This document shows, one piece after another, positions 4,497 to 62,763 of a DNA stretch of 64,000 nt. The notes under the pieces were generated by a model. It had not been told where the DNA came from and did not search any database. It was given only the letters and a program-made list of their open reading frames with translations. Every line of letters starts with the position of its first letter. Within the stretch, counting starts at the first letter, position 1. A program made the translations under genes and the position numbers. The stretch spans positions 248,001 to 312,000 of the IMG/VR virus record IMGVR_UViG_3300031669_000001. One strand, 5' to 3'.

Positions 4497-4694
4497 ATGA
4501 AATTCAAAAACTTTGTAACAGAATCAAATGACGGCGTGGACGTAGTGAAGGTAACGGTACCTCTTTTGATCCGTTTACTTGAGTGGGCGCGTGAAGAAGC
4601 TAAGAACGACATCCAAATTCACGAACTTACTGAAAAGATCGTGAAGAAGAACGGCGTTCTTAACTCAGATGATTATGACTCTTTGATGTCTTGA
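4497..4694 (+). CDS. Small hypothetical protein, candidate internal head protein (MKFKNFVTES)
   Basis: GGAG RBS before ATG 4497; late box upstream; N-terminus resembles the T4 internal-protein capsid-targeting sequence. Confidence 0.6.
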   Translation: MKFKNFVTESNDGVDVVKVTVPLLIRLLEWAREEAKNDIQIHELTEKIVKKNGVLNSDDYDSLMS

Positions 4695-5191
4695 GAACCG
4701 ATACGAAGATTGTTAGCAGCTCTACCAGTCCAACCAGCCCCAAATGTAGACCAAACTGAGAGGTGACGCCAAAAGTCTAGACGCTCAGCTGTAAGAAGCA
4801 TGATTACTTGAGCTGGTTTAAAGCTCTTGATAGTTGCAACCGTAACAGGACCCACATTACCGTCGGGTGCAACACCAACAGCAGTTTGAAGATGTCTTAA
4901 AGCGGTTTGAATTCCGCTATTAACAGCAAAGTCAAAAACTTGGAATGAGATAGCTGGATCATATTGATCCATCTTACCTGCATCCCAGAAGAAAGCTTTG
5001 TAAATGACGCTCGCTTGATCACGAGTCATGTCGGCGATCGTTGTATCTGTTGGTAAAAGATTAGCACCGATAGCTTGGTGTAGAACTGGCCATGTGATAC
5101 CCCAGTTTGTTTCTCCACCAGGATCTGCTGGATTGTTTACGTAACCGCCTTCGTTGCCTATGATTCTATTGAATGCTGTTGGGTAGTCCAT
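4673..5191 (-). CDS. Endolysin, glycoside hydrolase family 108 with peptidoglycan-binding domain
   Basis: EGGYVNNPADPGGETNWGIT catalytic signature; FDFAVNSG; start reassigned to MDYPTAF at 5191. Confidence 0.9.
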   Translation of the reverse strand: MDYPTAFNRIIGNEGGYVNNPADPGGETNWGITWPVLHQAIGANLLPTDTTIADMTRDQASVIYKAFFWDAGKMDQYDPAISFQVFDFAVNSGIQTALRHLQTAVGVAPDGNVGPVTVATIKSFKPAQVIMLLTAERLDFWRHLSVWSTFGAGWTGRAANNLRIGSQDIKES

Positions 5192-5263
5192 TATTTTCCT
5201 TTGTGTTAAAAATTCTTTCCACGATTGCATCTATGGAATAGTCAAACGTTGTGATCTCTACAT

Positions 5264-5634
5264 CTACGTTAGATGGACGCTCGAACATTTTGTTAGTGTC
5301 ATCAAATCTTCCAGCGTTGTAAGGGATCCGACTTGAATAGGGCTAAACTGGGAAACAGTCGAATTTATACCTAGTTGCCCATCAACATTCAATCCCCAAC
5401 TCCAAAGAGTTCCATCAGTTTTTAATGCTAATGAATTTGTATAAGCAGCAATTGCTGACCAAGTGATTCCTGATCCTACTTGAGTAGGACTGCTTATATG
5501 AGGCCAGCCAACAGGACCAAGATTTAATCCTAGGTCACCATCTAAGTTATACTCCAAGACCATAGACCACCTACAACAGGACCTAGGCTAGGTTTTACTG
5601 CACTTCCAATCCCTATAAAAAATGAACTAAACAT
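5264..5634 (-). pseudogene. Frameshifted, truncated RCC1/BLIP-II-repeat protein
   Basis: ATG 5634 overlaps the upstream TAA and reads [27 protein letters not shown]. The RCC1 consensus continues (YNLDGDLGLN...DGTLWSWGLNVDGQLG) only after a frameshift at about 5552-5556. Only about 2 repeats remain. Confidence 0.7.
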
Positions 5635-8360
5635 TATGCCACTCCATGTTTGCTTAATCCAAACCATACATGTGTAGAATCTACAACATAGAATGTAAGT
5701 AAGTTAACTGCACTGGCAGTGGTAGACACCGTAGGTATTGTTCCATCATTAGAAATCCAATTGGTGTCAAAGGTTAAGGTCGAAGGTGTTGCATTTTGTG
5801 TGATAGCAATTTGTCCACTTGTCCCAGCTACTGCATTTGTTGGGTTGCTCAATACCTGTGAAGTTGTAGCTTGCAGAGCCAATGAGAAGTTATTCGTTAA
5901 ACTTAAATTCACGGCAACCGCATTTGCTGCAACTGAAAGAGCTGTCACGGCAAACGATTGTGTAGCGGTGAAAGTTTCCACATTTGCGAGATATGCCACA
6001 CCAGCAGGTACTACACCTGTTGGACCTGTTGGGCCTTCAAGACCTGTAGGACCTGTAGGACCTTCTATACCAGCCGGACCTGTAGCTCCATCTGCACCAG
6101 TTGGACCAGTGAGTGAAGGACCGGTAGGACCGTCTAAACCTGTAGGACCGGTAGGACCGTCTAAACCTGTAGGACCGGTAGGACCGTCTAAACCTGTAGG
6201 ACCGGTAGGACCGTCTAAACCTGTAGGACCGGTAGGACCGTCTAAACCAGTAGGACCACCAGCTGGGCCTGTAGCTCCAGTAGGACCAGTTACGAATGAG
6301 TCGGCACCTGTAGGACCTGTAGCACCTTCAAGACCTGTAGGACCAGTTACGAATGAATCTGCACCCGTAGCACCAGTTGGACCAGTGAGTGAAGGACCGG
6401 TAGGACCGTCTAAACCTGTAGGACCGGTAGGACCGTCTAAACCTGTAGGACCACCAGCTGGGCCTGTAGCTCCAGTAGGACCAGTTACGAATGAGTCGGC
6501 ACCTGTAGGACCTGTAGCACCTTCAAGACCTGTAGGACCAGTTACGAATGAATCTGCACCCGTAGCACCAATAGGACCTGTAGGACCTGTAGCACCTTCA
6601 AGACCAGTAGGACCAGTTACGAATGAGTCGGCACCTGTAGGACCTGTAGCACCTTCAAGACCTGTAGGACCAGTTACGAATGAATCTGCACCCGTAGCAC
6701 CAATAGGACCTGTAGGACCTGTAGCACCTTCAAGACCTGTAGGACCAGTTACAAATGAGTCGGCACCAGTTGCACCAGTTGCACCTATAGCTCCAGTAGG
6801 ACCAGTTACGAATGAGTCTGCACCTGTAGGACCTGTTGGACCGTCTAAACCTGTAGGACCTGTAGCACCTTCAAGACCTGTTGGGCCTGTAGGACCACCA
6901 GCTGGACCTGTTGGGCCTTCAAGACCTGTAGGACCTGTAGGGCCACCAAACGCACCTGTAGGACCAACTTCGCCCGTAGGACCCGTAGCACCTTCTAGAC
7001 CAGTAGCTCCAGTAGCTCCAGTAGCGCCAGTGTTACCTAAATTACCTTGAGGACCTGTAGGGCCGGTTACGAATGAGTCTGCACCAGTAGGACCGGTAGG
7101 ACCGCCGAATGGACCTTGAGGACCTGTAGGACCTATCGCGCCAGTAGCGCTGTTAGCACGGATAGTTCCATAAGAAGATGCGCTCCAACCTGTAAAGACA
7201 GATTCTGTGTTCAGATAGATTGTAGTTGGAACAGCCAGAACATATCTCTTTGTTGTCAGAGGAACTTCATAGATTGTAGTGAACGTTGTATTAGTAAAGT
7301 CTTGTGCGTTAGTTTGAAAGTTAAATCCATTGCCTGTACCAATCACCGCGCTTGTAGAATTTGAAGCTCCAGAGAGCGTAGTTACAGATGCACCAGCTGA
7401 AATTGGAGATTCATTTGCAGTACCTGTACCTGTACCGGGACCTGTAGCAACGAAAGTTGTTCCAGATAAACTATCTGTTGCGCCTATCAAAGTAAAATCT
7501 GTATTGCCTGGACTTGCAATTGTGTAAGAATATCCAGTTACAAAAGAACCAGCTGTTACTATTGGAGCAACAAATTGGTAACCTACGAAACCTGAAATAT
7601 CCCACGAACCCGCTGATAGTGAGATGCTTGTAATGTTCGCAGTTAAACCTGATGTCAATGTAACAGGAACAGATATGACAGATTCTACGTAGATACCATC
7701 ACCTGTTGCGCCTGTAGGACCAGTAATTGACAATCCATCTGCACCAGTAGGACCTGTAGGTCCTTCGAGACCCGTAGGACCTGTTACAAAAGAGTCAGCA
7801 CCAGTAGGACCAGTAATAGCTAGACCATCAGGACCTGTAGGACCTGTTACAAAAGAGTCAGCACCAGTAGGACCAGTAGGACCACCAAATGCACCTGTAG
7901 GACCAACATCTCCTGTAGGACCTGTAATCGAAGGACCAGTAGGACCAGTAACTGAAGGACCTGTAGGACCACCAGGTCCTACAAAACCAGATTTGATAGA
8001 ACCATCAAGCTGCATAACTGAGAAGCCGTCTGTGTCAATGTAAGCTAGAGTTTCACTAGATTGAAGAGTTATCTTGCAAAGAACGTATGTGATAGCGTTA
8101 TCGTTGACTTGTAAAGTCACTACGATCGGTGCCGTATCCGCGTTGTAGATAGTGAGAGCTTTTAACTGTCTTTGAGTAGCTGCTGCAGGTGCAGTTACCA
8201 TTGGTTGAGCTATTGTAGAGCCGATGTTTCCATCAGAGCTCAGTGGAGTAAATGTTGTGCTTGTGATGTCAACGTAGCTAGCTGTCCAAGGTATGGAAGC
8301 TCCTGGAAGAGATCCTAAGAAGATCTCAAGAGATTTAGTAGTTGTATCAAAAATGATCAT
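5634..8360 (-). CDS. Collagen-like (Gly-Pro-Thr) tail/whisker fibre protein, 908 aa
   Basis: Two long G-X-Y tracts (GPT, GAT, GLE) separated by globular domains; C-terminal fibre-tip-like domain. Confidence 0.85.
6118..6252. repeat. 27-bp tandem repeat x5 inside the collagen gene
   Basis: ggaccggtaggaccgtctaaacctgta units (encode TGLDGPTGP). Confidence 0.9.
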
Positions 8361-8361
8361 A

Positions 8362-9729
8362 TTAGACTCTCAGTGAAATAAGTGTTAGTACTTGTTGTTG
8401 ATTTGCAGATGACGGTCCTGTAGGTCCTGTTATTGATGGTCCTGCAGGACCTGTAGAACCTGCTGGACCAGTTGGTCCTTCTACATTCGAAGCTGCTCCA
8501 GTAGGTCCCGTTATCGATGGTCCTGTAGCGCCTGTAGGTCCAACTGAACCAACAGGACCGGCGCTTCCAGGTAATCCAGCAACACCTTGAGGACCTGTTG
8601 CGCCTTTTACACCGGCGGGTCCGATAGCGCCAGGCGCACCAACAGGTCCTGTAGGTCCCGCTACACCAGCTCCTGTAGGTCCTGTAATTGATATGCCAGC
8701 GGGACCTGTTGCACCAACCTGTCCAATGGCACCAGCGGGACCTGTAGGACCGTCAACGCTTCTACCGACAGAGTAAGATGCATTCGTTGTCAGTAATACA
8801 GTCTGAGCGCTTAAAATTATAGCAACTTGCTGAGATATTAAGTTAGACGCTAAAGGTGCAGTTTGTGTTAACTCGCCTATAGATCTTGGAGAAGTATCTG
8901 CGTATAAAACTTTACCTTGAGTTAAATCCCAATTCCAATTAGAATTGTAAACTACGCCACCTGTTATTATCTTTGCTGCCTGACCATACGTTAAATTTAC
9001 ATCTACGATACCGATGATAGGGTGTATTAAATCTGCGCCATCTGCTACGCTGATAGTACCTTCACTTTTAACTGAAACACAGTAGAAAGCTGGTATAGAT
9101 TCAGCGGCTATAGACTGAATTTCTAGATCAACAGGAACAGAGTAATTACCTTGATCAACAGCAACAGGTGACGCTGTCGTTAGGAAGTTTCCATTGATCG
9201 TTTTGATTCCCGATCCATCGCTGCCTCGTAGGATGTAACCAGCTGCAACATCATTAGTTGTATCTGGTCCAAGTCCAACTTGAGTTCCCAAAGGTTCAAA
9301 TGTAAAGCTCGATCCACCATTGAAGGAACCTGCAAAGACTCTACACTTTTCTACCCACTGACTTCCACTCCACACCTTCATAATGAATGTGTTTAGATCA
9401 TACCAATGTTGATCTACTGCCGGCGCTGTTGGAGTCACGCTCGATGTTATAGGATCATAAATCGTGTAACTTCTAGTGATGAGACCTGTCGCTAAGTCGA
9501 TATCCCAATAGAGATAGAATGGAGCAGAACCACTGAATGGACCCCAAGCATTTGCAACCGAAGAAACTTCATTGATCAGGTAATTTGCCTGACCGTACGT
9601 AACCGTTACGATGACAGGCGTCGTCGGCGTAGCTAAGATTTGAACGTACGTGCCATTATAGTCAAGGAAAGATGGACTTCCATTAACTATCGGTGCTGTA
9701 ACTATACCTTGCCTGAAATTTAATTTCAT
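8362..9729 (-). CDS. Virion protein with C-terminal collagen-like tract
   Basis: About 120 aa of G-X-Y repeats at the C-terminus; late box upstream; co-transcribed with 5634-8360. Confidence 0.75.
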
Positions 9730-11527: not shown

Positions 11528-12298
11528 TTATTTGCCAGCCAAATACAGCTCATAAGTGCGAGGGAACTGCTTCTGAATCAGTTCACCTACTGCATCTGCA
11601 TACTGACGAATTTCCCATTGAGCTGCAGGTGCCTGCCGCAACGTCAAGAATGCAAGCCAATTGCGAAGATTTGCGCTGGCTCTCATTCGAGAATAACGTG
11701 CAACAGGCACTGGAAGACGAGCGAGTTCCTTTGGAATTCCAGCTTCAATTCCCTGCTCATAGATCGATTGGCAATTTTCGTAGCAAATCTCAAGAGTTGA
11801 TCTCCAATCTTTTGCTTCCTGCTCAGTTAACGCCTTACCTGTTCCTTGAGCTTGCTTGTTGGTAGTTGTAGTGTTTGCACCTAACATCAATCGTTCGATC
11901 GAAGGGATGTAGTTCTCGTCTGGAAGAGGGATGTAGCGAGCTGACATCTCATTGTAGCTCTGCGTGCGATGACGGTGCCATTCACGGAACACGAAGATAG
12001 GAGCCTTGACTTCGATTACCATACCAGCCATTTCAAATGGAGTGGAGTGCTTGTTGTTGTAGAGGAAAGCAAGAAGCTTTTCATCTCCTGGAGTATCGTG
12101 ATCACACGTACAACGACGACTTATCGCCTCGAGGTGAGGAAGGTTGGAAGAGAGTCTACATGCCTTGGAATGATTTGGACCCCATCCAAGGAATCCTTTT
12201 CCAGTTGACATGCGTGCTGCCTCGATGATGCTTTCATCGCTTCCCCAATGATCGATAAAGCTAACGTAACCTTGGTCTAACACATCTAATTTCTTCAT
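11528..12298 (-). CDS. thyX: Flavin-dependent thymidylate synthase ThyX
   Basis: REWHRHRTQSYNEMSARY ThyX motif; HSTPFE; NLRNWLAFL; QWEIRQYA. Confidence 0.95.
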   Translation of the reverse strand: MKKLDVLDQGYVSFIDHWGSDESIIEAARMSTGKGFLGWGPNHSKACRLSSNLPHLEAISRRCTCDHDTPGDEKLLAFLYNNKHSTPFEMAGMVIEVKAPIFVFREWHRHRTQSYNEMSARYIPLPDENYIPSIERLMLGANTTTTNKQAQGTGKALTEQEAKDWRSTLEICYENCQSIYEQGIEAGIPKELARLPVPVARYSRMRASANLRNWLAFLTLRQAPAAQWEIRQYADAVGELIQKQFPRTYELYLAGK

Positions 12299-14328: not shown

Positions 14329-14579
14329 CCGAAGATGTTCTCACAGATGTCACAAAGGTCGAAGAATGGATCTCGTCTGATTTCTTTTGAATCAGGCAGC
14401 GCCATCCAAAATGTATTCAACATCGAGACAAGTTTGTCATCGTCAAATTCACTCTGATCAATAGACGCGGTGCTCATGTTATACTTACCCAAGACCTTCA
14501 GGTATAGATCGATGTAATACTTTTCCGAGAAGATCTTATCTTGAAGGTTTATTGCAGCTCGTTGAATTTCTGTAGTCAT
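14325..14579 (-). CDS. Hypothetical protein
   Basis: 84-aa ORF coupled to the PARP stop. Confidence 0.6.
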   Translation of the reverse strand: MTTEIQRAAINLQDKIFSEKYYIDLYLKVLGKYNMSTASIDQSEFDDDKLVSMLNTFWMALPDSKEIRRDPFFDLCDICENIFG

Positions 14580-15922
14580 TATTTTTCCTCGAACTCGATG
14601 AGGTATCGAATGTTGACTTGACTGTTTCGATACACTATCATCTCATTGTTCATCACACCGCTCTTGCCAGCTTCTGCAAATGTAGAATCATAACCAGCTT
14701 TTGGCAGTGACTCATAAGAGCTCCGGGGTGTGTAATGTTTACCCATTGCGAAGTCGACTAAGAACATGAAGCAGTTCTTGTCTGTCGCACCGCGATCCCA
14801 ATAACCACGCGCGTAGTTCAACGCCTTGGTAGACTGATCTGAACCGTAGATACCATCGCCGAACATCCGGCCTGTTACCTGGAACGAACCACTCTTTGGT
14901 GGGCAGAAGAGACCGCTCTTCAGGATCGACAGCACGTTGAACACGCGAGTACCGTGCCAAAGCATTTGAATGTTTGGCAGCTTAGCACCATCTTTATCAA
15001 ATGCAGCTTTGCGCTCTGACATGTTCACTTCGTAGAAGCGAATCGGCTTCATGTTCTTTGACTCATGCCGATTGTTGATGCTGTCAAAGAACATTTTTTC
15101 AATCTTTGCAATCATGATCTTATCGCTGAGAATCTTCAAGTCTGCGTTGAAGATATTTGGAGTTGTAGCGAGAGTCGTTTGAACTGCAGAGGTCTTCGCA
15201 GCAGTAACGCGAGCTTCGGCGAGATCAGCAGATGCATCCAATTGATCGAGTAGGGTGCTTTGACTCTGCAGCGTGTTGTGACCTGAGAAGAATTCTTTGT
15301 GCCAGCCGCGCCGATGCCCGACTGTCTGAGGAACGAGCATCAAGTAAGTATTGAGGTTCTCGATGAATTGCTTGTCATCAAACTTTTGCTTCGCGACAAA
15401 CTTGTCCATCGCGTCGAGGGTTGCACGTGCCTGTTTCACGGTGTCCTTAGTGATCACGCCGATTGGAGTTGAAATGATACCTGTCGTCAAGTCGATGTCC
15501 ATCTGACCACCAGAAGCTTTGACCAACTCATGTCTGTTAGCTTCGACGAGACGTTCGATAAGCTTTGATAGCTCAGTGTCACCGCCGCCGAGTTGTTGCT
15601 TGGCAGCTTCACGAACAACGGCCTTAGACATAGCAGGCCCTGTAGGAGCGATGTCAGCTTTCTCAGCGAGGATGGCGATTTCACGGTATGGCGGCTTGTA
15701 GGTTGCAGAACCTTCTTTACCGCTTCCCTTCAGCTTTTCGCGAATTTTTGCATCGAGCTGCTTGCGCGTCATATGCTTTGGATCATCTTCATTGCGAGTC
15801 TTTCCAACTCGACCGTAGATAACGGTAACCATCTCAGTGTCAGTGTCGTACTTGTATTCCCAGAACTTGTTGTTGTTGTTAAGCGCGTCGGCGCACACGA
15901 ATTTCTTATGTTCGATTGTCAT
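14579..15922 (-). CDS. Poly(ADP-ribose) polymerase-like protein (WGR + regulatory + catalytic domain)
   Basis: N-terminal NNNKFWE...YGRVG (WGR-like); catalytic H-Y-E triad in LWHGT, FGDGIYGS...KALNY and NNEMIVY; terminal YLIEF. Confidence 0.9.
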   Translation of the reverse strand: MTIEHKKFVCADALNNNNKFWEYKYDTDTEMVTVIYGRVGKTRNEDDPKHMTRKQLDAKIREKLKGSGKEGSATYKPPYREIAILAEKADIAPTGPAMSKAVVREAAKQQLGGGDTELSKLIERLVEANRHELVKASGGQMDIDLTTGIISTPIGVITKDTVKQARATLDAMDKFVAKQKFDDKQFIENLNTYLMLVPQTVGHRRGWHKEFFSGHNTLQSQSTLLDQLDASADLAEARVTAAKTSAVQTTLATTPNIFNADLKILSDKIMIAKIEKMFFDSINNRHESKNMKPIRFYEVNMSERKAAFDKDGAKLPNIQMLWHGTRVFNVLSILKSGLFCPPKSGSFQVTGRMFGDGIYGSDQSTKALNYARGYWDRGATDKNCFMFLVDFAMGKHYTPRSSYESLPKAGYDSTFAEAGKSGVMNNEMIVYRNSQVNIRYLIEFEEK

Positions 15923-18005: not shown

Positions 18006-18779
18006 TTATTTCCTCTTTTGTTTTGCTTGTATTAACCAAGCTTGATAGTTAGCAACTGTGGTTTTGTCGAGACTTGGATCAAACTTGATTCCAGTAACAG
18101 CTTCAATCGCCTCCAAGTTTACAACAAATTTTGATAGGTCGTGTTCAGGCTCGTTAGGCATCATGAATGCGATTGACTTTCCAGTCTGAGCATCGATCAT
18201 GATCTTCCACAGTGAGCTTGGAACCCAAACTTTATCCTTACCGATCGTAGGTGGATTGATGGTCTTGTAGACTGGACCTGTGATGACGTAGACACCAGCT
18301 GGATGGCTCTTCGTGTAGCCTCGAATGTAAGTTTCCATTTGCTTCCAGATAACCTCATTGTTTTTGTAATTTTGAGGCACCATGTTGGACATGAAGAACG
18401 ACTCATGAACGCAAACTTCACACGCGCTGAAGTCTTGATCTGGGGTCATGTGACCGCGATCGCATCTTCCGCCGTTACACATGGAATGCACGTAATCTTT
18501 TGGAGAAGATTGATGACTTGGATCGATGGCTGGATCTACTCTAAAGTCATTGCTTCTCTTCATCTTTCCAGTGTGATTAGCTGCGAGAAATTCAGTCGTG
18601 TAGATAGGATTTCTGCTCGTCCAAGAGTAGGCGACGGCGTATTCTTTGTGGCAGATATACTGGTCAGCGTTGATAACTGGGGCTGACTTGTAAGTTAGCT
18701 GTTTGCAGGAATCATCAATAGGATTTGCAAACGCGGTGGTTGCTGCAAGCAGCAAGAATAGAGAAAGTAGTTTCTTCAT
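18006..18779 (-). CDS. Exported DNA/RNA non-specific endonuclease (NucA/Serratia-type)
   Basis: Signal peptide MKKLLSLFLLLAATTAFA; DRGHMTP active-site motif; SFFMSNMVPQ; YVITGP. Confidence 0.9.
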   Translation of the reverse strand: MKKLLSLFLLLAATTAFANPIDDSCKQLTYKSAPVINADQYICHKEYAVAYSWTSRNPIYTTEFLAANHTGKMKRSNDFRVDPAIDPSHQSSPKDYVHSMCNGGRCDRGHMTPDQDFSACEVCVHESFFMSNMVPQNYKNNEVIWKQMETYIRGYTKSHPAGVYVITGPVYKTINPPTIGKDKVWVPSSLWKIMIDAQTGKSIAFMMPNEPEHDLSKFVVNLEAIEAVTGIKFDPSLDKTTVANYQAWLIQAKQKRK

Positions 18780-23219: not shown

Positions 23220-25150
23220 TATTCAAAGCTGCTGAAGTAGTTAATATTGTTTAGCCATTCTTTGCGCTCGTCTGCTTGACTTCCACGGAAGGCGAGTTCT
23301 AATCCCTTGAAGTCTACATCTTCGAGCTTGCCAACTCGGCAGAGGTAGCTCTCACGATTTTCCAGAATCTGTTTGAATCGTGCGGTCTTGAACTTACCAA
23401 GTCCTTTGAAACGAGCAGCTTCATGCTTAGGAGCAGTCTTGGCCCACTCTTCGTAGGATTCGTCAGTCATGAACTCGATCTCCTTACCCTTGACCGTTGC
23501 AATGACCAGCGGGGTGTTCATGCGGTATATGATGCCGAGTTCGAAGAGCTCTGGCCAGAAGTAAGCGAAGAAGTTTATGAGCAGAGAACCAACGTGGAAG
23601 CCGTCCAAGTCTTGGTCGGACAAGATGATGATCTTACCGAACCGAAGGTCTTTCACGCTCTTGACTGGAACACCAATCTTCAAGCCTGTGATCTTCAGGA
23701 TGCTCTTGATCTCGTTGTTGCCGTTGTCTTCTTTTTCCTTATCTTTTTTCTTACCGCCGATTACTCGCTTCAAGTCCACATCCATGACGTTCAACGGTTT
23801 CCCCTTTAACGCGAAGCTGCCAATGTAAGGGTTCTTTCCGCGAGCTTCATGAATTGACTTACGAGCTGAGTCACCTTCTGTCAGGTAGAGTTCGCAAAGG
23901 TGACGGTGATGATCTTCCATCGCGTCAGAGAACTTGTCAACGCGCCGCGGGTTACCCTTGTCGATGTCCTTGCTAAGTTCTTTCAATTGACGCATCTCTT
24001 CAGCTTTAGCTTTCGCTTCTGCCCAAAGCAGAACGCGATCAACGATGCCAGAATCGATGACTCGCTTGATAAACTTGTCCGTTGGTTCCCATGCAGTCTT
24101 GTATTCTTTGATCTCGGTGATCAGATTTTCTTTGGTCTGCGAATCATAGCGAGGGCGAACTATTGACGCGTTGATGAACACCTGCATGTGAGCTTGAATT
24201 TGAGTAGGGATAACGTCAATCTTGTGCTTCTTGTTGATGTACTCACGGAGTTTCACTGCGATCTGAGACCAGACGTAAAATAGGTGGGTACCACCTTGCA
24301 AAGTCTCCGTAGTGTTGACGAATGAGACGTGCTGAAATCCATCGTCAGAAGCCGCAACACCGATCTGCCAGTTACCATTATCGTCATACTCAAACTTGTC
24401 AGTGTAGAGGCTGATGTAATCTTTGAATGAAGCGATCCGGATCTGTTCGCCGTTAAGATACACCTTCAGCTTAGGATTACACCCAGCTACATCGTAGACT
24501 CTCTTCACGAGTTTGCTATAGTTGTCATCATCAAGCTTGGTATCTATGTGGGCGTAATCTGGTGTGTAGGTAATCTTGGTGAAGCCTTTACCATTACCAT
24601 CAGTGATCTTTGGATCGGTCTTATCCATCATGTTGTTAGTCCAAGTTTGCTTGAACTTCTTCTTGCCGTCAGAAGATTCAACGGTGAAGGATGTGGAGAA
24701 GATGTTGGTGAGAGATGCACCTTCACCATTTTGGCCTGCGCCTGTTGAGTCTTCAGTATCGTCGAAGTTTGAACCTGAACGCAGGTAACCAAAGATCAGA
24801 GTTGGGACGTACTCGTCATATTCTTTATGCTTGACGACTGGAATTCCACCATTATCCCAAACCGTTATCTCGCCTGTAGGCTGATCAATGTCAACTTTGA
24901 TGACGTCCAGGTGCTTTCCTTCTGGACGCTTTGAGTGATCGACTGCGTTTGAGATGACTTCATCGAAAAGCTTGATGAGGCCAGGATTGTAGGTTATCTC
25001 TCGCTTGGTCATAGATGAACCATTCAGGATCACCCAAGATTCAGCTGTGTGGGGTTTGACTGAGCCAATGTATCGACCTGGTCGAATCAGAACATGCTCA
25101 ACATCTGAGAGTTTACGATATGTAGTTTCAATTGTTTTATTTTTTGTCAT
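23219..25150 (-). CDS. Type II DNA topoisomerase large subunit (T4 gp39+gp60 equivalent, GyrB-like)
   Basis: RPGRYIGS, FDEVISNAVD, GQNGEGA ATP lid; TEGDSA; TOPRIM SDQDLDGFHV; RFKGLG. Confidence 0.95.
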   Translation of the reverse strand: MTKNKTIETTYRKLSDVEHVLIRPGRYIGSVKPHTAESWVILNGSSMTKREITYNPGLIKLFDEVISNAVDHSKRPEGKHLDVIKVDIDQPTGEITVWDNGGIPVVKHKEYDEYVPTLIFGYLRSGSNFDDTEDSTGAGQNGEGASLTNIFSTSFTVESSDGKKKFKQTWTNNMMDKTDPKITDGNGKGFTKITYTPDYAHIDTKLDDDNYSKLVKRVYDVAGCNPKLKVYLNGEQIRIASFKDYISLYTDKFEYDDNGNWQIGVAASDDGFQHVSFVNTTETLQGGTHLFYVWSQIAVKLREYINKKHKIDVIPTQIQAHMQVFINASIVRPRYDSQTKENLITEIKEYKTAWEPTDKFIKRVIDSGIVDRVLLWAEAKAKAEEMRQLKELSKDIDKGNPRRVDKFSDAMEDHHRHLCELYLTEGDSARKSIHEARGKNPYIGSFALKGKPLNVMDVDLKRVIGGKKKDKEKEDNGNNEIKSILKITGLKIGVPVKSVKDLRFGKIIILSDQDLDGFHVGSLLINFFAYFWPELFELGIIYRMNTPLVIATVKGKEIEFMTDESYEEWAKTAPKHEAARFKGLGKFKTARFKQILENRESYLCRVGKLEDVDFKGLELAFRGSQADERKEWLNNINYFSSFE

Positions 25151-25179
25151 TTTCTCACATTTCTATAGCTAAGATGTGT

Positions 25180-26778: not shown

Positions 26779-26781
26779 ATG

Positions 26782-27225
26782 TTATTTGTAGAGCGCGATT
26801 TCTGCTTTAAGAGCTGCGATTTCTTTTTTAGTTTTCTCATCTTGAGGCTTAGTCTTTAATTCTTTCAACTTGCCCATCAGATAATCAACTTCATCTACAT
26901 TCTTGGTTTCGCCACCTTTTTTAACAGGAAGACCGCGCTTTACCTCTGTAGAACCGACTGGGTGATAAACATACTCTTGATATTCTTGCTTGCCTGACTT
27001 GAAGGCTTTCTTCTCAGTCTTATCGTTAACCTTATTGAAGACTACACCATGAACAACAAATTGTCTGATTCCATCTTTGCTCTTGAAGGAGTGGATGGAA
27101 GGCTTCTGAATGGAAAGGATGTTTTCATTTGGCTTGAATTTTTCACGAATAGCAGCGTCAAGCTCTGACATCTTGCTTTCTTCTAGAGTTTCAGATGCTT
27201 CTAGTAAAGTCTTTAGGATTGACAT
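26782..27225 (-). CDS. Lys/Glu-rich late protein, candidate internal head protein
   Basis: MSILKTLLEASETLEES with L-x-E motifs; perfect TATAAATA upstream. Confidence 0.6.
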   Translation of the reverse strand: MSILKTLLEASETLEESKMSELDAAIREKFKPNENILSIQKPSIHSFKSKDGIRQFVVHGVVFNKVNDKTEKKAFKSGKQEYQEYVYHPVGSTEVKRGLPVKKGGETKNVDEVDYLMGKLKELKTKPQDEKTKKEIAALKAEIALYK

Positions 27226-27250: not shown

Positions 27251-27258
27251 TATTTATA
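27251..27258 (-). promoter_or_regulatory. Late promoter (perfect T4 consensus)
   Basis: TATAAATA. Confidence 0.75.
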
Positions 27259-27517
27259 GGAAGAATGGGGAATACTCTATCCCCCAACCATGCTCTAGGT
27301 CAAGACTTGCATCTTTGTAAGCTTGCCCAAAGTTTGAATTTCCAGACTGAGTCATTCTAAAAATTTGATCCTTTTTGATTTCTCGAATGCTAACCTCTAC
27401 CCACTCACCATCTTGAAAAATTTCAAAAACGGATTTATTGGTTGTAGGCTTTTTCTTTTTAACGTCAACATTCTTAACATCAATCGGTACAATCTTTTGC
27501 TCTGTTTTTGTGATCAT
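27254..27517 (-). CDS. Hypothetical protein
   Basis: 87-aa ORF. Confidence 0.55.
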   Translation of the reverse strand: MITKTEQKIVPIDVKNVDVKKKKPTTNKSVFEIFQDGEWVEVSIREIKKDQIFRMTQSGNSNFGQAYKDASLDLEHGWGIEYSPFFL

Positions 27518-29818: not shown

Positions 29819-30334
29819 CTAAAGTTTGAGTTTCTTCAGTTCTTTGATCGTCTTAGCAGCGCTGACGTGTAGAATTCCTATTCCACCTGCAGCTACCCAA
29901 GGATCAATGGACTTGGAACGATCGTCTATCAGAATAGAATGTTCGTTTGCATACTTTGACTTTTCCTTAGACTGTCTTACAAACAGCGCTCTCTTAGCAG
30001 CTTCGTATCCGAGGTGCTTCTTTACCCACTCTCGCTTTTCTTCAGCTGCCCTTGGAGTGTGTCCTGTCGAAGATAGGACAATCGGATCATACTTCTTAAT
30101 GTGATTCCAAAGCACCATAGCGTCTGGCATTAAGTCCATGTGCTCGAAGAACTTTTTACCAGAACGAGCTCTCTTGTCAAGCTCCTTAAAGAATTCACTC
30201 GTCTCTCTATCGTCGGCCTTGTCGAGATCGATGCCAGTAACTTCTTTAGCCTTCTTCATGAAGTCTGCCAAGACTCCATCTAGGTCCACGTAGACGGTGT
30301 AGTGATTTGGATTTAAGATTTCCGTAAGCTTCAT
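29819..30334 (-). CDS. HAD-superfamily 5'(3')-nucleotidase-like phosphatase with MKLTEIL N-terminus
   Basis: YVDLDGVLADF motif I; LSST; KREWV; ILIDDR motif IV. Confidence 0.85.
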   Translation of the reverse strand: MKLTEILNPNHYTVYVDLDGVLADFMKKAKEVTGIDLDKADDRETSEFFKELDKRARSGKKFFEHMDLMPDAMVLWNHIKKYDPIVLSSTGHTPRAAEEKREWVKKHLGYEAAKRALFVRQSKEKSKYANEHSILIDDRSKSIDPWVAAGGIGILHVSAAKTIKELKKLKL

Positions 30335-30618
30335 CTTGTTTTTAGAACCTTTAATGTATGACTGAACGAAGAACCCTTCGCGTGCATGTGATCTTTGACG
30401 GCTTTCTTAATTGAATCTTTGAACTTTCCAGGGATGACCTCATCAAAATCTCCATCAAAGAAGTGCCAGCTTCCCTGATCTTCATCCTTTGGAAGAGTTG
30501 CGTGATGATCACCAGGCGCGTACTCTACGGATGAATTTCTATTGAGGGTGTAGGTGTTCTTTCCACCCGGAACTAGAGGAAAGCCTACTTTTCTTTGAAC
30601 TATTTCTGTAAGCTTCAT
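30331..30618 (-). CDS. Hypothetical protein with MKLTEIV N-terminus
   Basis: Shares the first 6 residues (MKLTEI) with the neighbouring HAD gene. Confidence 0.6.
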   Translation of the reverse strand: MKLTEIVQRKVGFPLVPGGKNTYTLNRNSSVEYAPGDHHATLPKDEDQGSWHFFDGDFDEVIPGKFKDSIKKAVKDHMHAKGSSFSHTLKVLKTR

Positions 30619-30721
30619 GCTACCACCACAGGGTGAAGGATTGAGCGATTATAGGCGCTGACGAGTTGAAGTTTGTAATTTTTTGGAATAAAAGAAACAC
30701 GAGATCATCCTAAGTGATGAT

Positions 30722-30955
30722 CTATTTACTCTTTCTATTCCTTCGACGAGATTTTTGGGATAGCTTGCGCAGTCGCTTGCGATTTGATGGTTTCGGTTTG
30801 CCTATAGGTCCTACATAATCCTGCACGCTGCCATTTATGATGTTGTCGTCATCGTTCCTGATTCTTAATGGATAGATAGGAACATCTTCGTAGATTGGAG
30901 GCGCACAAACTACTGACGCGATAGCTAACATTGCTAGAGTTTTTTGAATTGTCAT
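30722..30955 (-). CDS. Hypothetical protein; its 3' end contains an AGTAAATA late-like box (30723-30730)
   Basis: 77-aa ORF with a basic tail. Confidence 0.5.
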   Translation of the reverse strand: MTIQKTLAMLAIASVVCAPPIYEDVPIYPLRIRNDDDNIINGSVQDYVGPIGKPKPSNRKRLRKLSQKSRRRNRKSK

Positions 30956-41457: not shown

Positions 41458-41468
41458 TGCATATTTAC

Positions 41469-42340: not shown

Positions 42341-42573
42341 TTGAAAACTGAGTTCTCAATCACTCCACGGCTCAAAGTTATCTCTGCATCTTCTCGATTT
42401 GAAACTATCGTGAATGAGTCACAAGATCTGAGAAGCTCTTGAATGTTATCTCTTTCTTCTGCGGCTTCTTCCGATGAAGAAAATAACCCAGTAGCGCTAC
42501 CTTCAAATTCTCCTACTTTACTGTACACATGAACATGTACCAAGTAGCCATGTTCTACGTCAAGATCATCCAT
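42319..42573 (-). CDS. Hypothetical protein
   Basis: 84-aa ORF with GAGG RBS. Confidence 0.55.
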   Translation of the reverse strand: MDDLDVEHGYLVHVHVYSKVGEFEGSATGLFSSSEEAAEERDNIQELLRSCDSFTIVSNREDAEITLSRGVIENSVFKWQIVSL

Positions 42574-42582
42574 AAAAATTCC

Positions 42583-43653: not shown

Positions 43654-43686
43654 ATATTTCTCCTGTTATTTGTTTGTTGTATTTTA

Positions 43687-43812
43687 TGTCGGCGCGAGCA
43701 GGATGCCGGTATTCACTTCGCTAATCTCGCGCTGCTCGGGCGTGGCATCTTTTTCCTCGACGATGCGCTGCACATCGCCCTGTGCGTCGCGCACGATGCG
43801 TCCGTAGCCGTG
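43687..43812 (-). pseudogene. glmU: 126-bp internal fragment of a bacterial glmU gene
   Basis: Alternative frame reads [42 protein letters not shown], matching GlmU GYGRI...IVE.KDA..EQ..I.E.NTGI. 80/126 GC; 32/42 codons end in G/C. Confidence 0.9.
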
Positions 43813-44683
43813 ATGTGAGCCAACGCGTAAATTCAAACTCTTGAGGGATAGCTTCGAATTGACAAGCTCTCAAGAACTTAACTTCCGCTGGACCACTGAT
43901 AGGAGGACAAGAAATTTCCTCATAGGGATCTTTTTTGGTAGTTGGTAACGACAGAAAGTTTTCTCTATTTTCGATTGTCGATCCTGTGATCTTCTCAAGA
44001 AGCTCGAAGTGTCGTTCGTAAACGTGAAAAGAATCTGCAGAGTGATGATAGTTACCGTACTTCAACTCTGGATAAAATTCACGCAATGCATTGAGCACCA
44101 TCTCATGAGTAAAACTGAAAGCTGGAGCATCATTTGCCATTCCATAGACAGAATCCTGTGAACGCATCCTAACGCTCATGTTCAGAAAGTTTTCACGAAT
44201 CCTGAAGTTTAGCGCGTATGTACAAGGGACGTCATTAGTGTCGCTAAGAAGATGATCTCTGCTTAGAATCGATATAGAAGCTCTGCGAGAATCTTTGTCA
44301 TTCTTTAACTGATTGACGACGTTGTCAAATTGACTTACGGGAGTATCTCTGAAGATATATTGCCCGTAGTTTGAGTTTATGGATCCATCACGATTGATGA
44401 GATTGCCCCACATCTTTGCAAAGTCTGCTATGGAAGTATCAAACTTGTCACCTTTCAGGTACCAGAGAAATTCTCTCTTGACGTAGTCTAACTTGAAGCC
44501 GCGAGATGCAAAGCTTGTGAATCGGACGAAAGGTGGAAGGTTGTAGGTATAGTTTTCTATTTCAATGGACTTTTGACCTCGAGGAGATACTCTCTTTCCT
44601 CTTGCAATTAAGTCTTCATAGATGTTTCTAAATGTTGATTCGCTACTGACTACATTATCGTTGTGGTGTCCTGCATTTGACAT
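43721..44683 (-). CDS. Thymidylate-synthase-fold enzyme, probable dCMP hydroxymethylase/modifying enzyme
   Basis: DSRRA, DVPCT catalytic Cys, [13 protein letters not shown] (Asp in place of the ThyA Asn), SFHVYERH. The last ~29 aa derive out of frame from the glmU insert. Confidence 0.75.
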
Positions 44684-47066: not shown

Positions 47067-51299
<4,233 letters not shown>

Positions 51300-51300
51300 C

Positions 51301-52185
51301 ATGCCATTCTTATCTACTTTCGGCACGGCATCTGTTGGAGGTTTTCGTAAAAATAATTTACTGAAACTTCCTTCAAGTATTACATATTTGATTGTTGCAG
51401 GTGGAGGCGGCGGTGCTAAAGATAATTATTCTGGTGGTAGAGGTGCTGGAGGCGGTGGTGCTGGTGGATTATTGACGGGTGTAACATCCATTTCTCCCGC
51501 TACTTCATACCCTATAACAGTGGGAGCTGGTGGAGCTGGAGCAAATTCTTTAAATGGTTCAAATGGAACGAATTCTGTTTTTAATTCATTCATTGCGATA
51601 GGAGGCGGTGGAGGCGGTGGAGATAATAGTTCAGGAACACCTTACAATGGTTTAGCAGGAGGTTCAGGAGGCGGTGCAAGTCAGGGATCACCAGGTCAAA
51701 CAGGTGGAGCAGGAACAGCTGGTCAAGGAAATGCAGGCGGTAACTCTCCAACAAATTCTCCACCATACTGTGGAGCTGGTGGAGGTGGAGCTGGTGCCGT
51801 TGGATCCAACGGAGGATCATCAATAGGTAATGGAGGTATAGGATTATCGAGTTCTATAAGTGGAGTGTCGACGTACTATGCAGGCGGTGGTGGAAGTAAC
51901 AGCGGTCAAGGCGCAACCCCAGGTACTGGAGGAACCGGCGGAGGAGGAACCGGCGGACTTTATGGCGGTAGTGTAAATGGCATTTCAGGTACTGCAAACA
52001 CTGGTGGAGGCGGTGGAGGTGGAGCTTACGGTGGTAACGGTGGTAACGGTGGTTCAGGCATTGTTATCTTAAGCTTCTCTAATAATAGCTCTTTACCAAC
52101 TAATGTAACAGGATCTCCAACGATAACAAATGTCGGTGGAAATTACATCTACACCTGGACTACTAACGGTTCCATACAATGGTAA
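51301..52185 (+). CDS. Glycine-rich virion protein
   Basis: YLIVAGGGGG...GGGGAGG...GNGGSGIVIL pattern. Confidence 0.75.
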   Translation: MPFLSTFGTASVGGFRKNNLLKLPSSITYLIVAGGGGGAKDNYSGGRGAGGGGAGGLLTGVTSISPATSYPITVGAGGAGANSLNGSNGTNSVFNSFIAIGGGGGGGDNSSGTPYNGLAGGSGGGASQGSPGQTGGAGTAGQGNAGGNSPTNSPPYCGAGGGGAGAVGSNGGSSIGNGGIGLSSSISGVSTYYAGGGGSNSGQGATPGTGGTGGGGTGGLYGGSVNGISGTANTGGGGGGGAYGGNGGNGGSGIVILSFSNNSSLPTNVTGSPTITNVGGNYIYTWTTNGSIQW

Positions 52186-56739: not shown

Positions 56740-56925
56740 ATGGCAATATCTTACGATCAAGCAAAAACTATGATGAATGTACCATACATCTATTACGATG
56801 TTCCTGCAACTTATAACCCGATTCAACATCACTACATGATTTATGATGGTACAAAAATCATACTCGGTTTTGCGCAATCAGAAGATGCATTAGCAAGCTA
56901 TCAACTTCAAGCTCCACCTCCTTAA
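56740..56925 (+). CDS. Hypothetical protein
   Basis: GAGGAG RBS. Confidence 0.6.
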   Translation: MAISYDQAKTMMNVPYIYYDVPATYNPIQHHYMIYDGTKIILGFAQSEDALASYQLQAPPP

Positions 56926-57755
56926 AGCGAGGTTGGAACCTTGAGCTTCTTGTTTTTGATTCCTAAATGAGCCTGCTTGAGAATGTCCTCATACTTTTCA
57001 GCGTGAAGAAATTTAGGGGACCTGATGGCCTTGAGAGTGCCTTCAAAGGTCGATACTTGTTTAGGTGTTACTCCGGGACCAAACATCAACTTGGTCACCT
57101 TCGTTGGATCATCTGACACTACTTTCTTTTCAATCGTAGCAAAGTTCTTTCCTACCTTACCCTTCACGTTTACTCTAGACCTAACACCAACCATCAAACC
57201 TCTAGCGAGATCGTAGAAGTAACGCTTCACTTCTAGAGGCTCTCCCTTGTCGTCTTTCTTAAGGATTGTTTGTGGCATGTACTTCGCGATCGCGAAGAAG
57301 AGTTCGTTGCGCTGAGCACCTTTAAGACCATCTGCAAGATCTACAGGGTTAGCTTGATAGGACCACTCTGCGAAGTTGATGTTGTTGACAGGCATCAAGT
57401 CAACCTGTACGAGCTTGTCACCAACCGGGTACGCGAAGGAGAATACTCCAATGCCCTTCATGATTCTGGATGAGTGATTTCCCGCCAGCTCTTTTAGATG
57501 TTCATCGATGACGTTAGGATCACACTCGACCGCAACATCTAGATCTCCAGAGAGATCTGAATCTTGAGGTTTCTTTCCTGCAGAACCAATCAGCTTCACC
57601 TTGCTAGGTGATAGGCTTAGGATCGATTGAATGTTCTTGATAAGTTCAGGAGCAACCTCACGAACTTCAGCTTGAGTGATCTCTGATACCCCCTTCAAGG
57701 CTTTGCCCCCTTCTGTGAGGAGTGAGGGTGATTGGCATAATTCGAGTAGCTTCAT
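56922..57755 (-). CDS. Pol-beta-superfamily nucleotidyltransferase with L-x-E N-terminal tag
   Basis: LIGSAGKK...SGDLDVAVE and third Asp in VQVDLM; MKLLEL...LLTE-GG. Confidence 0.75.
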   Translation of the reverse strand: MKLLELCQSPSLLTEGGKALKGVSEITQAEVREVAPELIKNIQSILSLSPSKVKLIGSAGKKPQDSDLSGDLDVAVECDPNVIDEHLKELAGNHSSRIMKGIGVFSFAYPVGDKLVQVDLMPVNNINFAEWSYQANPVDLADGLKGAQRNELFFAIAKYMPQTILKKDDKGEPLEVKRYFYDLARGLMVGVRSRVNVKGKVGKNFATIEKKVVSDDPTKVTKLMFGPGVTPKQVSTFEGTLKAIRSPKFLHAEKYEDILKQAHLGIKNKKLKVPTSL

Positions 57756-57761: not shown

Positions 57762-57769
57762 TATTTATC
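57762..57769 (-). promoter_or_regulatory. Late promoter box
   Basis: GATAAATA 7 nt upstream of ATG 57755. Confidence 0.65.
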
Positions 57770-61813: not shown

Positions 61814-61817
61814 CAAG

Positions 61818-61847
61818 AAAAAGCCCCAGTCTCTTGGCGACTGAGGC
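61818..61847 (-). terminator. Intrinsic terminator
   Basis: GCCTCAGTC-GCCAAGA-GACTGGGGC followed by TTTT. Confidence 0.75.
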
Positions 61848-61879
61848 GCTGCCACGTTCCAAAGCCTTAGGCAAAGGAA

Positions 61880-62272
61880 CTATTTAAATACCGAGAGTGA
61901 AGCCTTTGCTTTTAGACCTTCATCGTTAGCGCTCTTGATGATCTTGTCGTTCTTCAAGACTACCACGTTAACTAGCTTGTACATCCCCTTCGACGCACCA
62001 CTTTGATCGTGAACGCCATGAAATTCTTTACCGATATCCTTTACGTAGCTGTCATAGGCATTACCTGAGCTAGAGATGAAAGCGAAGCGATTCTTTTCAT
62101 CAGGCTTCTTGCAGACTAGAATCGTATCTTCGCTATCTTTCCACTCTGAAGCTGCGGTGATAATATCTACCGTACGACGACCGTAAAGTGCCATGGTGGC
62201 AGGAAGAATTACCCAATCACGAACTCCATAACGACGCTCGTTGAGAGTTAAAAGCTCTAGAAGTAAGTTCAT
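61880..62272 (-). CDS. Hypothetical protein with MNLLLELLTLNE N-terminus
   Basis: Coupled to the DUF3175-like gene; L-x-E tag. Confidence 0.6.
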   Translation of the reverse strand: MNLLLELLTLNERRYGVRDWVILPATMALYGRRTVDIITAASEWKDSEDTILVCKKPDEKNRFAFISSSGNAYDSYVKDIGKEFHGVHDQSGASKGMYKLVNVVVLKNDKIIKSANDEGLKAKASLSVFK

Positions 62273-62763
62273 TTTGAAGCTTCCAGCGTTTCTAAGGCGC
62301 TCTTGAGAACAGCCTTACGATCAGCTGAAAGATTTTTACCTGCACGGTTGATGTAGAAGTTTAATGCAGATACAGCACCCTTCTTATCAGCGTGAGATGA
62401 CTTTAACCATTTAACGATAGCCGATGCAGAACCGTCAGCAAACAGTCCTTCTGGAGGATGCTTTTTGGTTTTAACGTCGCCAGACCACTTCAGCTCCATC
62501 AATTGTTCTAATGAAAGATCATCTTCCATGGATTCGTGAAGGCGCTTTTTAGCAGCTTCCAAAGTTGCCTTGCGATCAGCTGAGAGCTTCTTGCCGGCGC
62601 GGTTGATGTAGAAGTTGAGAGCGCCCATTGCGCTCTTAAGATCTTTGTGGGACGACTTCAACCAAGATGCGATCTCAGCAGCAGATCCAGTTGCAAAAAG
62701 ATCTTCAGGTGGGTGCTTCTTTGTCTTGACGTCGCCAGACCATTTTAATTCGGATAGTAACAT
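62269..62763 (-). CDS. Tandem DUF3175-like domain protein
   Basis: Two ~75-aa copies of ELKWSGDVKTKKHPPE.LFA.GSA...AL NFYINRAGK.LSADRKA.LE. Confidence 0.7.
   Translation of the reverse strand: MLLSELKWSGDVKTKKHPPEDLFATGSAAEIASWLKSSHKDLKSAMGALNFYINRAGKKLSADRKATLEAAKKRLHESMEDDLSLEQLMELKWSGDVKTKKHPPEGLFADGSASAIVKWLKSSHADKKGAVSALNFYINRAGKNLSADRKAVLKSALETLEASK

Follow-up and report, generated by a model that had tools for sequence, protein, structure and literature searches.

The stretch of DNA considered here, called the window, comprises 64,000 nucleotides and corresponds to bases 248001-312000 of a complete virus genome of 345,069 bp (IMG/VR record IMGVR_UViG_3300031669_000001; the focal genome) with direct terminal repeats and 42.8% G+C. 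Seven genes of the window, designated below by the position of the first letter of their start codon, encode proteins that begin with similar short peptides, for which a preliminary description had proposed the role of a tag marking proteins for packaging into the capsid and injection (Table 1). All seven peptides occur at the positions and in the form given there, and BLAST comparison among the seven proteins reveals no similarity outside the tag, in agreement with the proposal that the genes are otherwise unrelated. Six of the seven proteins are basic, with isoelectric points (pI) of 9-9.6, and searches of PHROGs and Pfam gave no match for 4497, 27225, 30618 and 62272. The remainder of the window is mostly devoted to nucleotide and nicotinamide adenine dinucleotide (NAD) metabolism, together with topoisomerase II, an RNA ligase, a PARP-like protein and collagen-like fibre genes. 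The phage is a jumbo myophage with T4-type head genes, kin to RsoM2USA, XacN1 and Agrobacterium phage Atu_ph07. The focal genome encodes a T4-type prohead protease (Peptidase_S77, PF03420, 94.9 bits; PHROG head maturation protease, E 1e-56; positions 125213-125854 of the genome), a gp23-type major capsid protein (PF07068, 311.6 bits) and a homologue of the protein annotated by the authors of XacN1 as a gp55-like late sigma factor. A Megablast comparison of 20 kb of the window with GenBank phages gave no match, and only the capsid gene, searched at low stringency, brought up relatives; by this gene, the nearest named relatives are Ralstonia phage RsoM2USA (344 kb), Xanthomonas phages XacN1 and Xoo-sp13, and Stenotrophomonas phages. 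Two complete metagenomic relatives, G001 (360 kb) and G003 (350 kb), were compared as a whole.

Table 1. Genes and signals of the window, with positions counted from its first letter
Feature	Position	Strand	Remarks
65-aa acidic protein (4497)	4497..4694	+	leader residues 1-9 (4497-4523), MKFKNFVTE, then S
147-aa basic protein (27225)	26782..27225	-	pI 9.3; leader MSILKTLLE/ASETLEE/S, residues 1-9 and 1-16 (27178-27225)
171-aa HAD/NT5C 5'(3')-deoxyribonucleotidase (30334)	29819..30334	-	starts MKLTEIL; PF06941, E 2.2e-9, above cut-off; phrog_2643, E 4.5e-34
95-aa orphan (30618)	30331..30618	-	starts MKLTEIV; weak candidate
277-aa Pol-beta-like nucleotidyltransferase (57755)	56922..57755	-	leader residues 1-15 (57711-57755), MKLLELCQSPSLLTE, then GG
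130-aa basic protein (62272)	61880..62272	-	leader residues 1-12 (62237-62272), MNLLLELLTLNE, then R
164-aa protein with two tandem DUF3175 domains (62763)	62269..62763	-	Pfam PF11373, E 8.6e-24; first domain from residue 8
Late box of GAATAAATA type, ATAAATA core	4470..4477	+	good box, 20 nt before ATG 4497
Perfect late box TATAAATA	27251..27258	-	26 nt upstream of ATG 27225
Terminator-like hairpin	27266..27286	-	immediately upstream of box 27251
Terminator-like hairpin with T-run	30702..30723	-	overlaps proposed box at 30723
Box GATAAATA	57762..57769	-	ends 6-7 nt before ATG 57755; atypically near (usual 16-60 nt)
Box AGTAAATA	62786..62793	-	one base off consensus; 23 nt upstream of ATG 62763; AAGGAG follows
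Dephospho-CoA kinase/cytidylyltransferase fusion, TerD-domain protein, ThyX and ThyA-like thymidylate synthases (as a group)	32929-34020, 1476-2117, 11528-12298, 43721-44683	-	

The tag had originally been defined as a loose L-x-E rule, and in this form it lies near chance: [LI]xE with the Glu at residues 3-15 occurs in 80 of 432 predicted proteins (18.5%), as compared with 10.6-16.7% in internal windows of equal size, and in the window alone 19 of 100 genes comply. A sharper motif, [LI]xE[LIFM][LIVFM] starting at residue 3 or 4, is found 16 times in the focal genome where 1.8 cases are expected from protein positions 21-200 (8.7-fold, P 1.4e-10). When the Glu of this motif is replaced by Lys, by Gln/Asn or by Arg, no enrichment is seen, and Asp (7 versus 1.5) and Ser/Thr (9 versus 2.2) give a modest one. 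A second form, [LI]xE[SAGT] with the Glu at residues 7-10, accounts for 17 cases, about three times the internal rate. Some of the expressions used were composed after inspection of the data; tests fixed in advance are given alongside them. The pattern recurs in the relatives. G001 carries 16 copies of the sharp motif versus 1.8 expected (P 1e-10) and 34 of [LI]xE[SAGT], with the Glu at residues 7-12, versus 7.7 (P 3e-12); G003 has 9 versus 1.3 for the sharp motif, and RsoM2USA has 47 versus 5.4 for [LI]xE[LIFM], largely owing to a tandem family of about 50 paralogues. These lie at 175-200 kb of RsoM2USA (MG752970, locus L096), where about 50 open reading frames (ORFs) make up tandem arrays of paralogues of about 195 aa, nearly all starting with M[KR]LxEI; G001 has weak homologues at 288-303 kb, and the focal genome has none. 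Applied to bacteriophage T4 as a positive control, the same statistic yields 12 versus 3.9 and recovers IPII, IPIII, gp21, gp22 and gp24, and the form MxLxELF picks T4 Alt (MELITELFDE). In a six-frame search of ORFs of at least 35 codons, strings of the MKLxE[IL] type fall on the first ATG in 13 of 15 cases. Some 28 proteins of the focal genome, enzymes included, carry the tag by a strict regular expression.

In this clade the tag is a short amphipathic leader of variable length on many unrelated proteins. Its consensus can be written as M-[KR]-[LIFW]-x-[EDQ]-[LI]-[LF]-x-E, with the variants MxILxELLxLxE and MKxFKxFLxE, and it usually ends in a hydrophobic residue, any residue and Glu. Among the seven window proteins, an (L/I)-x-E leader end is clear in four, namely LLE and LEE, with Glu at residues 9 and 16, in 27225, LTE at 15 in 57755, LNE at 12 in 62272 and VTE at 9 (Val at P3) in 4497; it is marginal in 30334, 30618 and 62763, which offer only an L-x-E with Glu at residue 5. 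In the families of 57755, 62272, 27225 and 4497, leaders of variable length and sequence precede invariant domain starts. The tag is a modular leader that lies outside the folded domain and is maintained at the level of amino acids.

A connection to head assembly is provided by the head genes themselves. The candidate scaffold protein of the focal phage (305 aa, encoded just upstream of the capsid gene and recognized by a weak scaffold PHROG match) starts with MDSILKKLLE-SDLLSE, the hyphen following the last residue of the leader, and its N-terminus, M[DEN]E[IL]L[KQ]KLLE[AS], is conserved in some 40 related head modules, the proteases of which share 44-86% identity with the focal one. Likewise, ALLE-G is retained close to the start of the capsid protein, and L-[IV]-E occupies residues 8-10 of the protease (…MILIE-E in the focal genome). 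The three closest relatives (L013, L014, L017) harbor differing sets of small genes between protease and scaffold, most of which start with an MxILxELLxLxE leader. The corresponding T4 N-termini are MKTYQEFIAE-A in IPII and IPIII, …LLIE-T in gp21, MLKEQLIAE-A in gp22 and MAKINELLRE-S in gp24. A predicted complex of protease and tag scored 0.01, which is not evidence either way.

Further evidence comes from the virion proteomes of cultured relatives. In RsoM2USA, ten virion gel bands were identified through LC-MS/MS (PMC8504454). Bands were matched by ORF number and mass, and only ORF86, ORF89 and ORF132 were used, ORF257 and ORF38 being unmatched by mass. ORF89 starts with MKTFKQFLSE-S and ORF132 with MKTFKQFLNTLME-A, the latter with an ATAAATA box at -32; ORF86 is untagged. 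A larger set is available for Atu_ph07, a 490-kb phage that encodes a gp21 homologue and whose virion proteins are listed in supplementary Table S5 (PMC6102473). Its rows were mapped to ORFs by molecular mass and gene order, 115 of 140 being consistent, and the 25 unmapped rows were conservatively counted as non-virion. With a T4-style rule fixed beforehand ([LI]xE, Glu at 7-10), 24 of 55 tagged proteins belong to the virion versus 90 of 778 others (odds ratio (OR) 5.9, P 1.4e-8), and with a clade-specific expression, written after the virion N-termini had been seen, the figures are 19 of 23 versus 95 of 810 (OR 36, P 5e-14). After removal of the tag, the 19 proteins form seven families, one of them with 13 members; counted by family, 7 of 11 tagged families are present in the virion where 13.7% would be expected (P 1.8e-4). 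Tagged proteins of this phage include gp43, gp53-63, gp65, gp561 and gp672. The 13-member family (leaders of the MRWEQLTE type; gp54-62 among them) is homologous to a gene outside the window, at 174999-175829 of the focal genome, which starts with MKLRSLIEE-A and whose orthologues in G001 and RsoM2USA also keep the leader.

The nucleotidyltransferase 57755, one of the cargo proteins originally proposed, is well supported and likely to be tagged cargo. In an alignment of 52 sequences (the window protein and 51 homologues), leaders of about 8-20 residues of the type M[KR][LF]x[ED][FIL]…, such as MKFREFLCE, MRFKEFIMLPLLE and MKLLEIVQSPLPLLE, all run into a near-invariant E-G-G-x-A-x-K. The AlphaFold2 (AF2) model has a mean confidence score (pLDDT) of 93, with values below 50 for residues 1-16 and of about 97 for the remainder. 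Foldseek matches it to DNA polymerases beta and lambda (E 2.5e-5, template modelling score 0.36-0.40), and G57, S58, D71, D73 and D119, corresponding to G-S…D-x-D…D, are invariant or nearly so in the 52 sequences; since a Pfam search of the protein gave no match, the Pol-beta assignment holds at the level of the superfamily only. A homologue is found among virion proteins: gp65 of Atu_ph07, detected with 10 unique peptides, aligns with 57755 in a profile comparison by hhalign (98% probability, E 7e-14). Residue 2 of gp65 pairs with residue 16 of 57755, the predicted mature N-terminus, and gp65 starts at the GG. A profile hidden Markov model (HMM) of the family found no match among T4 ORFs. The public gene call for 57755 (258 aa, P0001) begins at an internal TTG at 57698 and so loses the tag; this TTG follows GAAGGGGG, which resembles a Shine-Dalgarno site and encodes the conserved E-G-G. 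As this case illustrates, automatic gene calls can cut off or hide such leaders.

The basic protein 27225 is likewise well supported as likely tagged cargo. Its N-terminus resembles that of the scaffold, scoring 14 bits against a position-specific scoring matrix of the relatives' scaffold N-termini, and is the top non-scaffold match among 537 focal N-termini, with 0.03 matches of at least 12 bits expected. In six homologues (62-91% identical), M1, S2, L4, L7, L8 and E9 as well as E16 and S17 are invariant, and the linker is variable and contains an indel. The two-site layout resembles that of T4 IPII (IAE at 10, KLE at 19), and the protein is similar in kind to a T4 internal protein. A homologue was sought in five related genomes without success, and profile HMMs of the 27225 and 62272 families gave no match in Atu_ph07, RsoM2USA, G001, G003 or T4; T4 internal protein genes are likewise poorly conserved (PMC9026906).

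For 62272, a role as tagged cargo is also well supported and likely. In its 36 homologues the leaders differ in length and sequence, all being of the form M[KR][LI]x[ED]L[LF]…xE (e.g., MNLLLELLTLNE, MKLYEILVE, MKLSELFEELLSE and MRLSEILVE), and the conserved domain starts with DW.ILPATMALY. The AF2 model is of low confidence in residues 1-19, and a fold search gave no significant match. The gene is translationally coupled to 62763, the DUF3175-like member of the proposed cargo set. For the latter, both the DUF3175 assignment and the leader are confirmed; its status as cargo is moderately supported and less certain. The leader is short (MLLSEL, residues 1-6, within 62743-62763, before the first DUF3175 domain), and the box is off consensus. 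The orthologue in G001 has a single domain behind an 18-aa leader starting with MKLIDILSE and a GATAAATA box. The possibility that the LSELKW/LMELKW repeat forms part of the DUF3175 domain was dropped, given this leader ahead of the G001 domain; the internal LMEL ahead of the second DUF3175 domain is a copy of the leader that arose by duplication. In G001, the place of 62272, next to this orthologue, is occupied by a gene that starts with MDLILELLKVE behind a late box, and its product has no detectable similarity to the 62272 protein. A metagenomic homologue of 62272 (P0073, 152 aa) contains a remnant of a DUF3175 gene start, MLLSEFKLSSDAKTENHPPEDFF, fused in frame to leader and domain of the neighbouring gene, which indicates that the two genes are conserved as a pair and can become joined.

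The acidic protein 4497 is moderately supported and less certain as tagged cargo. Beyond its leader it consists of a small, widespread uncharacterised domain of the PLLIRLLEWAREEAK type with 1432 representative homologues, to which neither Pfam nor PHROGs assigns a name, larger homologues included. Standalone copies often have MKxFKxFxxE-type leaders of variable length (MKTFKEFLLE, MKFKKYLRE, MNFKQFLNE); in others the domain itself forms the start, and many copies lie within larger proteins. The two MKLTEI genes, 30618 and the HAD phosphatase 30334, are probably not cargo, and such a role is rated unlikely for both. The phosphatase had been listed among the injected proteins, a claim that is not supported: upstream of the genes lie the preceding gene's stop codon, a T-run hairpin and a sigma70-like TTACAA-N19-TATAAT, with no late box, and the orthologues of the phosphatase in G001, G003 and RsoM2USA are untagged. 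Among four more distant homologues, one begins with MKLNEV. The NT5C profile match of the phosphatase includes a DxDGV motif.

Transcription signals agree with late expression for part of the set. ATAAATA represents the functional late consensus, with 74 copies in the genome, 43 of which lie 5-60 nt upstream of a start on the same strand; variants with another base at position 2 remain at background (13 of 69 before starts). A first test with a loose tag definition (OR 2.3, p 0.08) was superseded by a stricter one, under which the tag is indeed more frequent behind late boxes than elsewhere, both in the genome (9 of 45 versus 19 of 505, OR 6.4, P 1.6e-4) and in the window (3 of 8 versus 2 of 91, P 0.003). 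Late boxes had been proposed upstream of the tagged genes at five positions; those at 4470, 27251 and 57762 fit ATAAATA, and those at 30723 and 62786 are off consensus. The hairpin next to the box at 27251 indicates that 26782-27225 is a late transcription unit of its own. In the G001 orthologue of 57755, a terminator is followed by CATAAATA about 26 nt upstream and then by a Shine-Dalgarno site. The 62786 box occupies the place of the canonical GATAAATA in the G001 orthologue and is possibly a weak late promoter. The 30723 box (AGTAAATA) was rejected as a late promoter: it coincides in part with the upstream gene's stop codon and with an arm of the terminator hairpin, and the sigma70-like TATAAT follows. 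Many tagged genes belong to clusters of co-directional genes and lack their own box, as exemplified by about a dozen at 88.9-98.9 kb of the genome. This cluster (88914-98854, outside the window, locus L005) consists of small genes, nearly all tagged (MKLHEL, MNLQELL, MKLFEL, MKLAILLES, MSLIKELLKLKES, MSILKELDLLSEG), lies directly downstream of structural genes with late promoters and looks like a variable cargo locus. At 140515-141147 of the genome (+; L008:2515-3147), a cytidylyltransferase-like protein with a GGRFQPF motif (phrog_395) starts with MKLSQIFE-AS and is preceded by an ATAAATA box; a longer leader is kept in the G001 orthologue, and the protein is another enzyme that may be packaged. 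The preliminary description had also assigned sigma70-like promoters to most metabolic genes. As a class such promoters are not enriched in 24001-44000 (31 versus 32.3 expected), and what stands of the claim is a recurring type: TTTACT-N16/17-TG-TATAAT, with an extended -10 and 10 of 12 matches, in gaps of the metabolic block at 32351, 31458, 29818 and 25209 (-).

Taken together, the tag is probably a packaging address comparable to the capsid-targeting sequence (CTS) of T4, a reading to which a probability of about 0.68 is assigned. By analogy with T4, the leader would bind to the assembling core of scaffold and protease, and the prohead shell would close around the protein. Cleavage after the Glu by the gp21-like protease would next set the mature form free within the head. 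The mature, mostly basic proteins would stay with the DNA and could leave the head along with it. The cargo may accordingly reside in the head interior, be injected and perhaps act before phage transcription or against host defence. Several points weigh against this reading. The virion evidence stems from relatives, the focal phage being an uncultured IMG/VR genome, and genes were called with a home-made caller based on codon usage and ribosome-binding sites (551 genes), the starts of which can be wrong. The clade expression applied to Atu_ph07 was, as stated above, composed with the virion N-termini in view, and 13 of the 19 tagged virion proteins are paralogues. Most virion proteins of Atu_ph07 (95 of 114) are untagged, and the virion-associated chitinase and lipase of XacN1, checked for the tag, do not carry it; the tag would thus constitute one route into the particle and not the sole one. 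Some tags, such as MKLTEI, lack a small-residue cleavage context downstream, and cleavage after the Glu is inferred throughout the clade from the T4 precedent. Finally, association with the virion does not fix the site as the head interior, and the large tagged cluster gp53-63 of Atu_ph07 could belong to another structure.

This last point leads to the alternative that survives best, although it is rather improbable: the tag might be an address for another compartment of the virion (tail, baseplate or whisker) or a handle for an assembly chaperone, not necessarily removed by the prohead protease and not linked to injection. Most tagged virion proteins of Atu_ph07 are encoded by coding sequences 31-76, which in the authors' view specify 'unique structural proteins', and the virion bears whisker-like structures (PMC6102473); moreover, the counterpart in RsoM2USA of the focal gp54-62 homologue is surrounded by neck and tail genes, and virion proteomics does not tell compartments apart. 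However, the tag is carried by the scaffold itself and by the small variable genes between protease and scaffold, its end conforms to the P3-hydrophobic/P1-Glu pattern of T4-type proteases, and it is similar to the propeptides that Alt, gp24 and the internal proteins carry, all of them head-internal in T4 (PMC9026906). A quite unlikely explanation attributes the conserved start to selection on expression, that is, on translation initiation or the mRNA, or to a recombination footprint at the 5' ends of genes. Several tagged genes lack an obvious Shine-Dalgarno site, the first 18 nt of the two adjacent MKLTEI genes match at 15 positions with only MKLTEI common to both proteins, and modular shuffling is known in T4-type phages. 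Yet the codons for Leu, Lys and Glu vary freely among tagged genes, which argues for conservation at the protein level, the most abundant late proteins (capsid, sheath and portal) are untagged, and neither the hydrophobic-x-Glu end nor a leader that changes in length and keeps its pattern is explained in this way. That chance and N-terminal composition (Lys-2, amphipathic first helices) produced the shared starts without any common function is the least probable explanation of all, for although the loose rule is near background and some matches are part of a fold, such as MNIFEML in T4 lysozyme and MLNSIIIEG in the P-loop kinase 42583-43287, the 8.7-fold enrichment at residues 3-4 falls sharply when the Glu is replaced and recurs in three other genomes, the virion proteome of Atu_ph07 contains 19 of its 23 tagged proteins, and leaders vary in length before conserved domains.

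The packaging reading is in line with what is known of other phages. In T4, residues 1-10 of IPIII are sufficient for packaging, residues 4 and 7 serving in targeting and residues 8 and 10 in processing, and Alt and gp21 carry propeptides similar to that of IPIII (PMC9026906, PMC5694885, PMC7697877). Like the CTS of T4 IPI, IPII and IPIII (Mullaney & Black 1996; PMC9026906), the tag is an N-terminal leader, of about 10 aa in T4, on unrelated and mostly small basic proteins, it ends in hydrophobic-x-Glu, it occurs together with a gp21-type protease and with similar N-termini on scaffold and vertex/capsid proteins, and its genes are poorly conserved between relatives and, in part, probably expressed late; MKTYQEFIAE of T4 lines up with MKFKNFVTE, MKLKEFLLE and MKTFKQFLSE of this clade. 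Several differences exist. The clade consensus is shifted (MKLxELLxE), leaders span about 5-20 aa, carriers are far more numerous and include enzymes, the mature proteins lack sequence homology to the T4 internal proteins, and the clade tag is known from sequence and from the proteomes of relatives. A precedent for an injected enzyme is T4 Alt, an ADP-ribosyltransferase that is packaged, injected and deprived of its termini by gp21 (PMC9026906, PMC5694885). Its leader, MELITELFDE, matches the MxLLxELLxLxE variant of 61880-62272 and of the small head-module genes of the relatives, whereas its fold is unlike that of the nucleotidyltransferase and its C-terminal processing is known. The phiKZ-like giant phages phiKZ, 201phi2-1 and SPN3US (PMC5694885, PMC10052503) package dozens of proteins, including paralogous cargo families, which a homologous prohead protease cuts after Glu; they differ in motif (S/A/G-x-E), in propeptides that often exceed 100 residues and in belonging to a lineage with a virion RNA polymerase and a phage nucleus. 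In its defining features at the sequence level, the clade tag thus behaves like the T4 CTS/propeptide system; cleavage and sufficiency for packaging are predicted by analogy, and the predicted cargo set is unusually large and contains enzymes. The XacN1, RsoM2USA and Atu_ph07 papers and a full-text literature search yielded no account of the tag, and the text on Atu_ph07 contains no occurrence of 'N-terminal', 'motif' or 'paralog'.

Other genes of the window deserve mention in their own right. A 447-aa protein at 14579-15922 (-) combines WGR, PARP regulatory and PARP catalytic domains (PF05406, PF02877, PF00644), so that this phage protein has the layout of a eukaryote-like poly(ADP-ribose) polymerase. 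A nicotinamide phosphoribosyltransferase (NAMPT_N and NAPRTase; 36694-38178, -) forms an NAD+ salvage pair with a cytidylyltransferase-like/NUDIX fusion of the NMNAT-Nudix type (40256-41413, -); pairs of this kind are reportedly used by phages against NAD-depleting defences. The non-specific DNA/RNA endonuclease at 18006-18779 (-; Endonuclease_NS, E 2e-44) has a signal-peptide-like start, MKKLLSLFLLLAATTAFA, and an ATAAATA late box at 18840, 54 nt upstream. Collagen triple-helix repeats occur in three large proteins that are probably fibres (5634-8360, -; 8362-9729, -; 47067-51299, +); late boxes at 9762 and 47002 directly precede two of these genes, and 51301-52185, the neighbour of the last, encodes a glycine-rich domain. 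The same window also holds the fusion, TerD-domain and thymidylate synthase genes grouped in Table 1.

A broader proposal, to be regarded as tentative, is that the address M-[KR]-h-x-[ED]-[LI]-h-x-E (h, hydrophobic) defines the packaged proteome across the XacN1/RsoM2USA/Atu_ph07 clade. Each phage would then load into its head two to three dozen fast-evolving cargo proteins, among them the Pol-beta-type nucleotidyltransferase, the cytidylyltransferase-like protein and the DUF3175 protein, as a counter-defence and takeover kit that is delivered with the DNA, acts in the first minutes of infection and can be read from metagenome sequence. Should the tag prove to be a packaging address, a peptide of this kind could serve to load foreign proteins into jumbo-phage heads, as has been done with the T4 CTS, and a share of the 131 proteins in the Atu_ph07 virion would be accounted for. 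The packaged or injected proteome of a large, mostly uncultured clade of 300-500-kb phages would then become predictable from sequence alone, and the tag would point to those among hundreds of orphan genes that act in the first minutes of infection, in early roles for which IPI* and Alt of T4, through anti-restriction and host takeover, provide the precedent.

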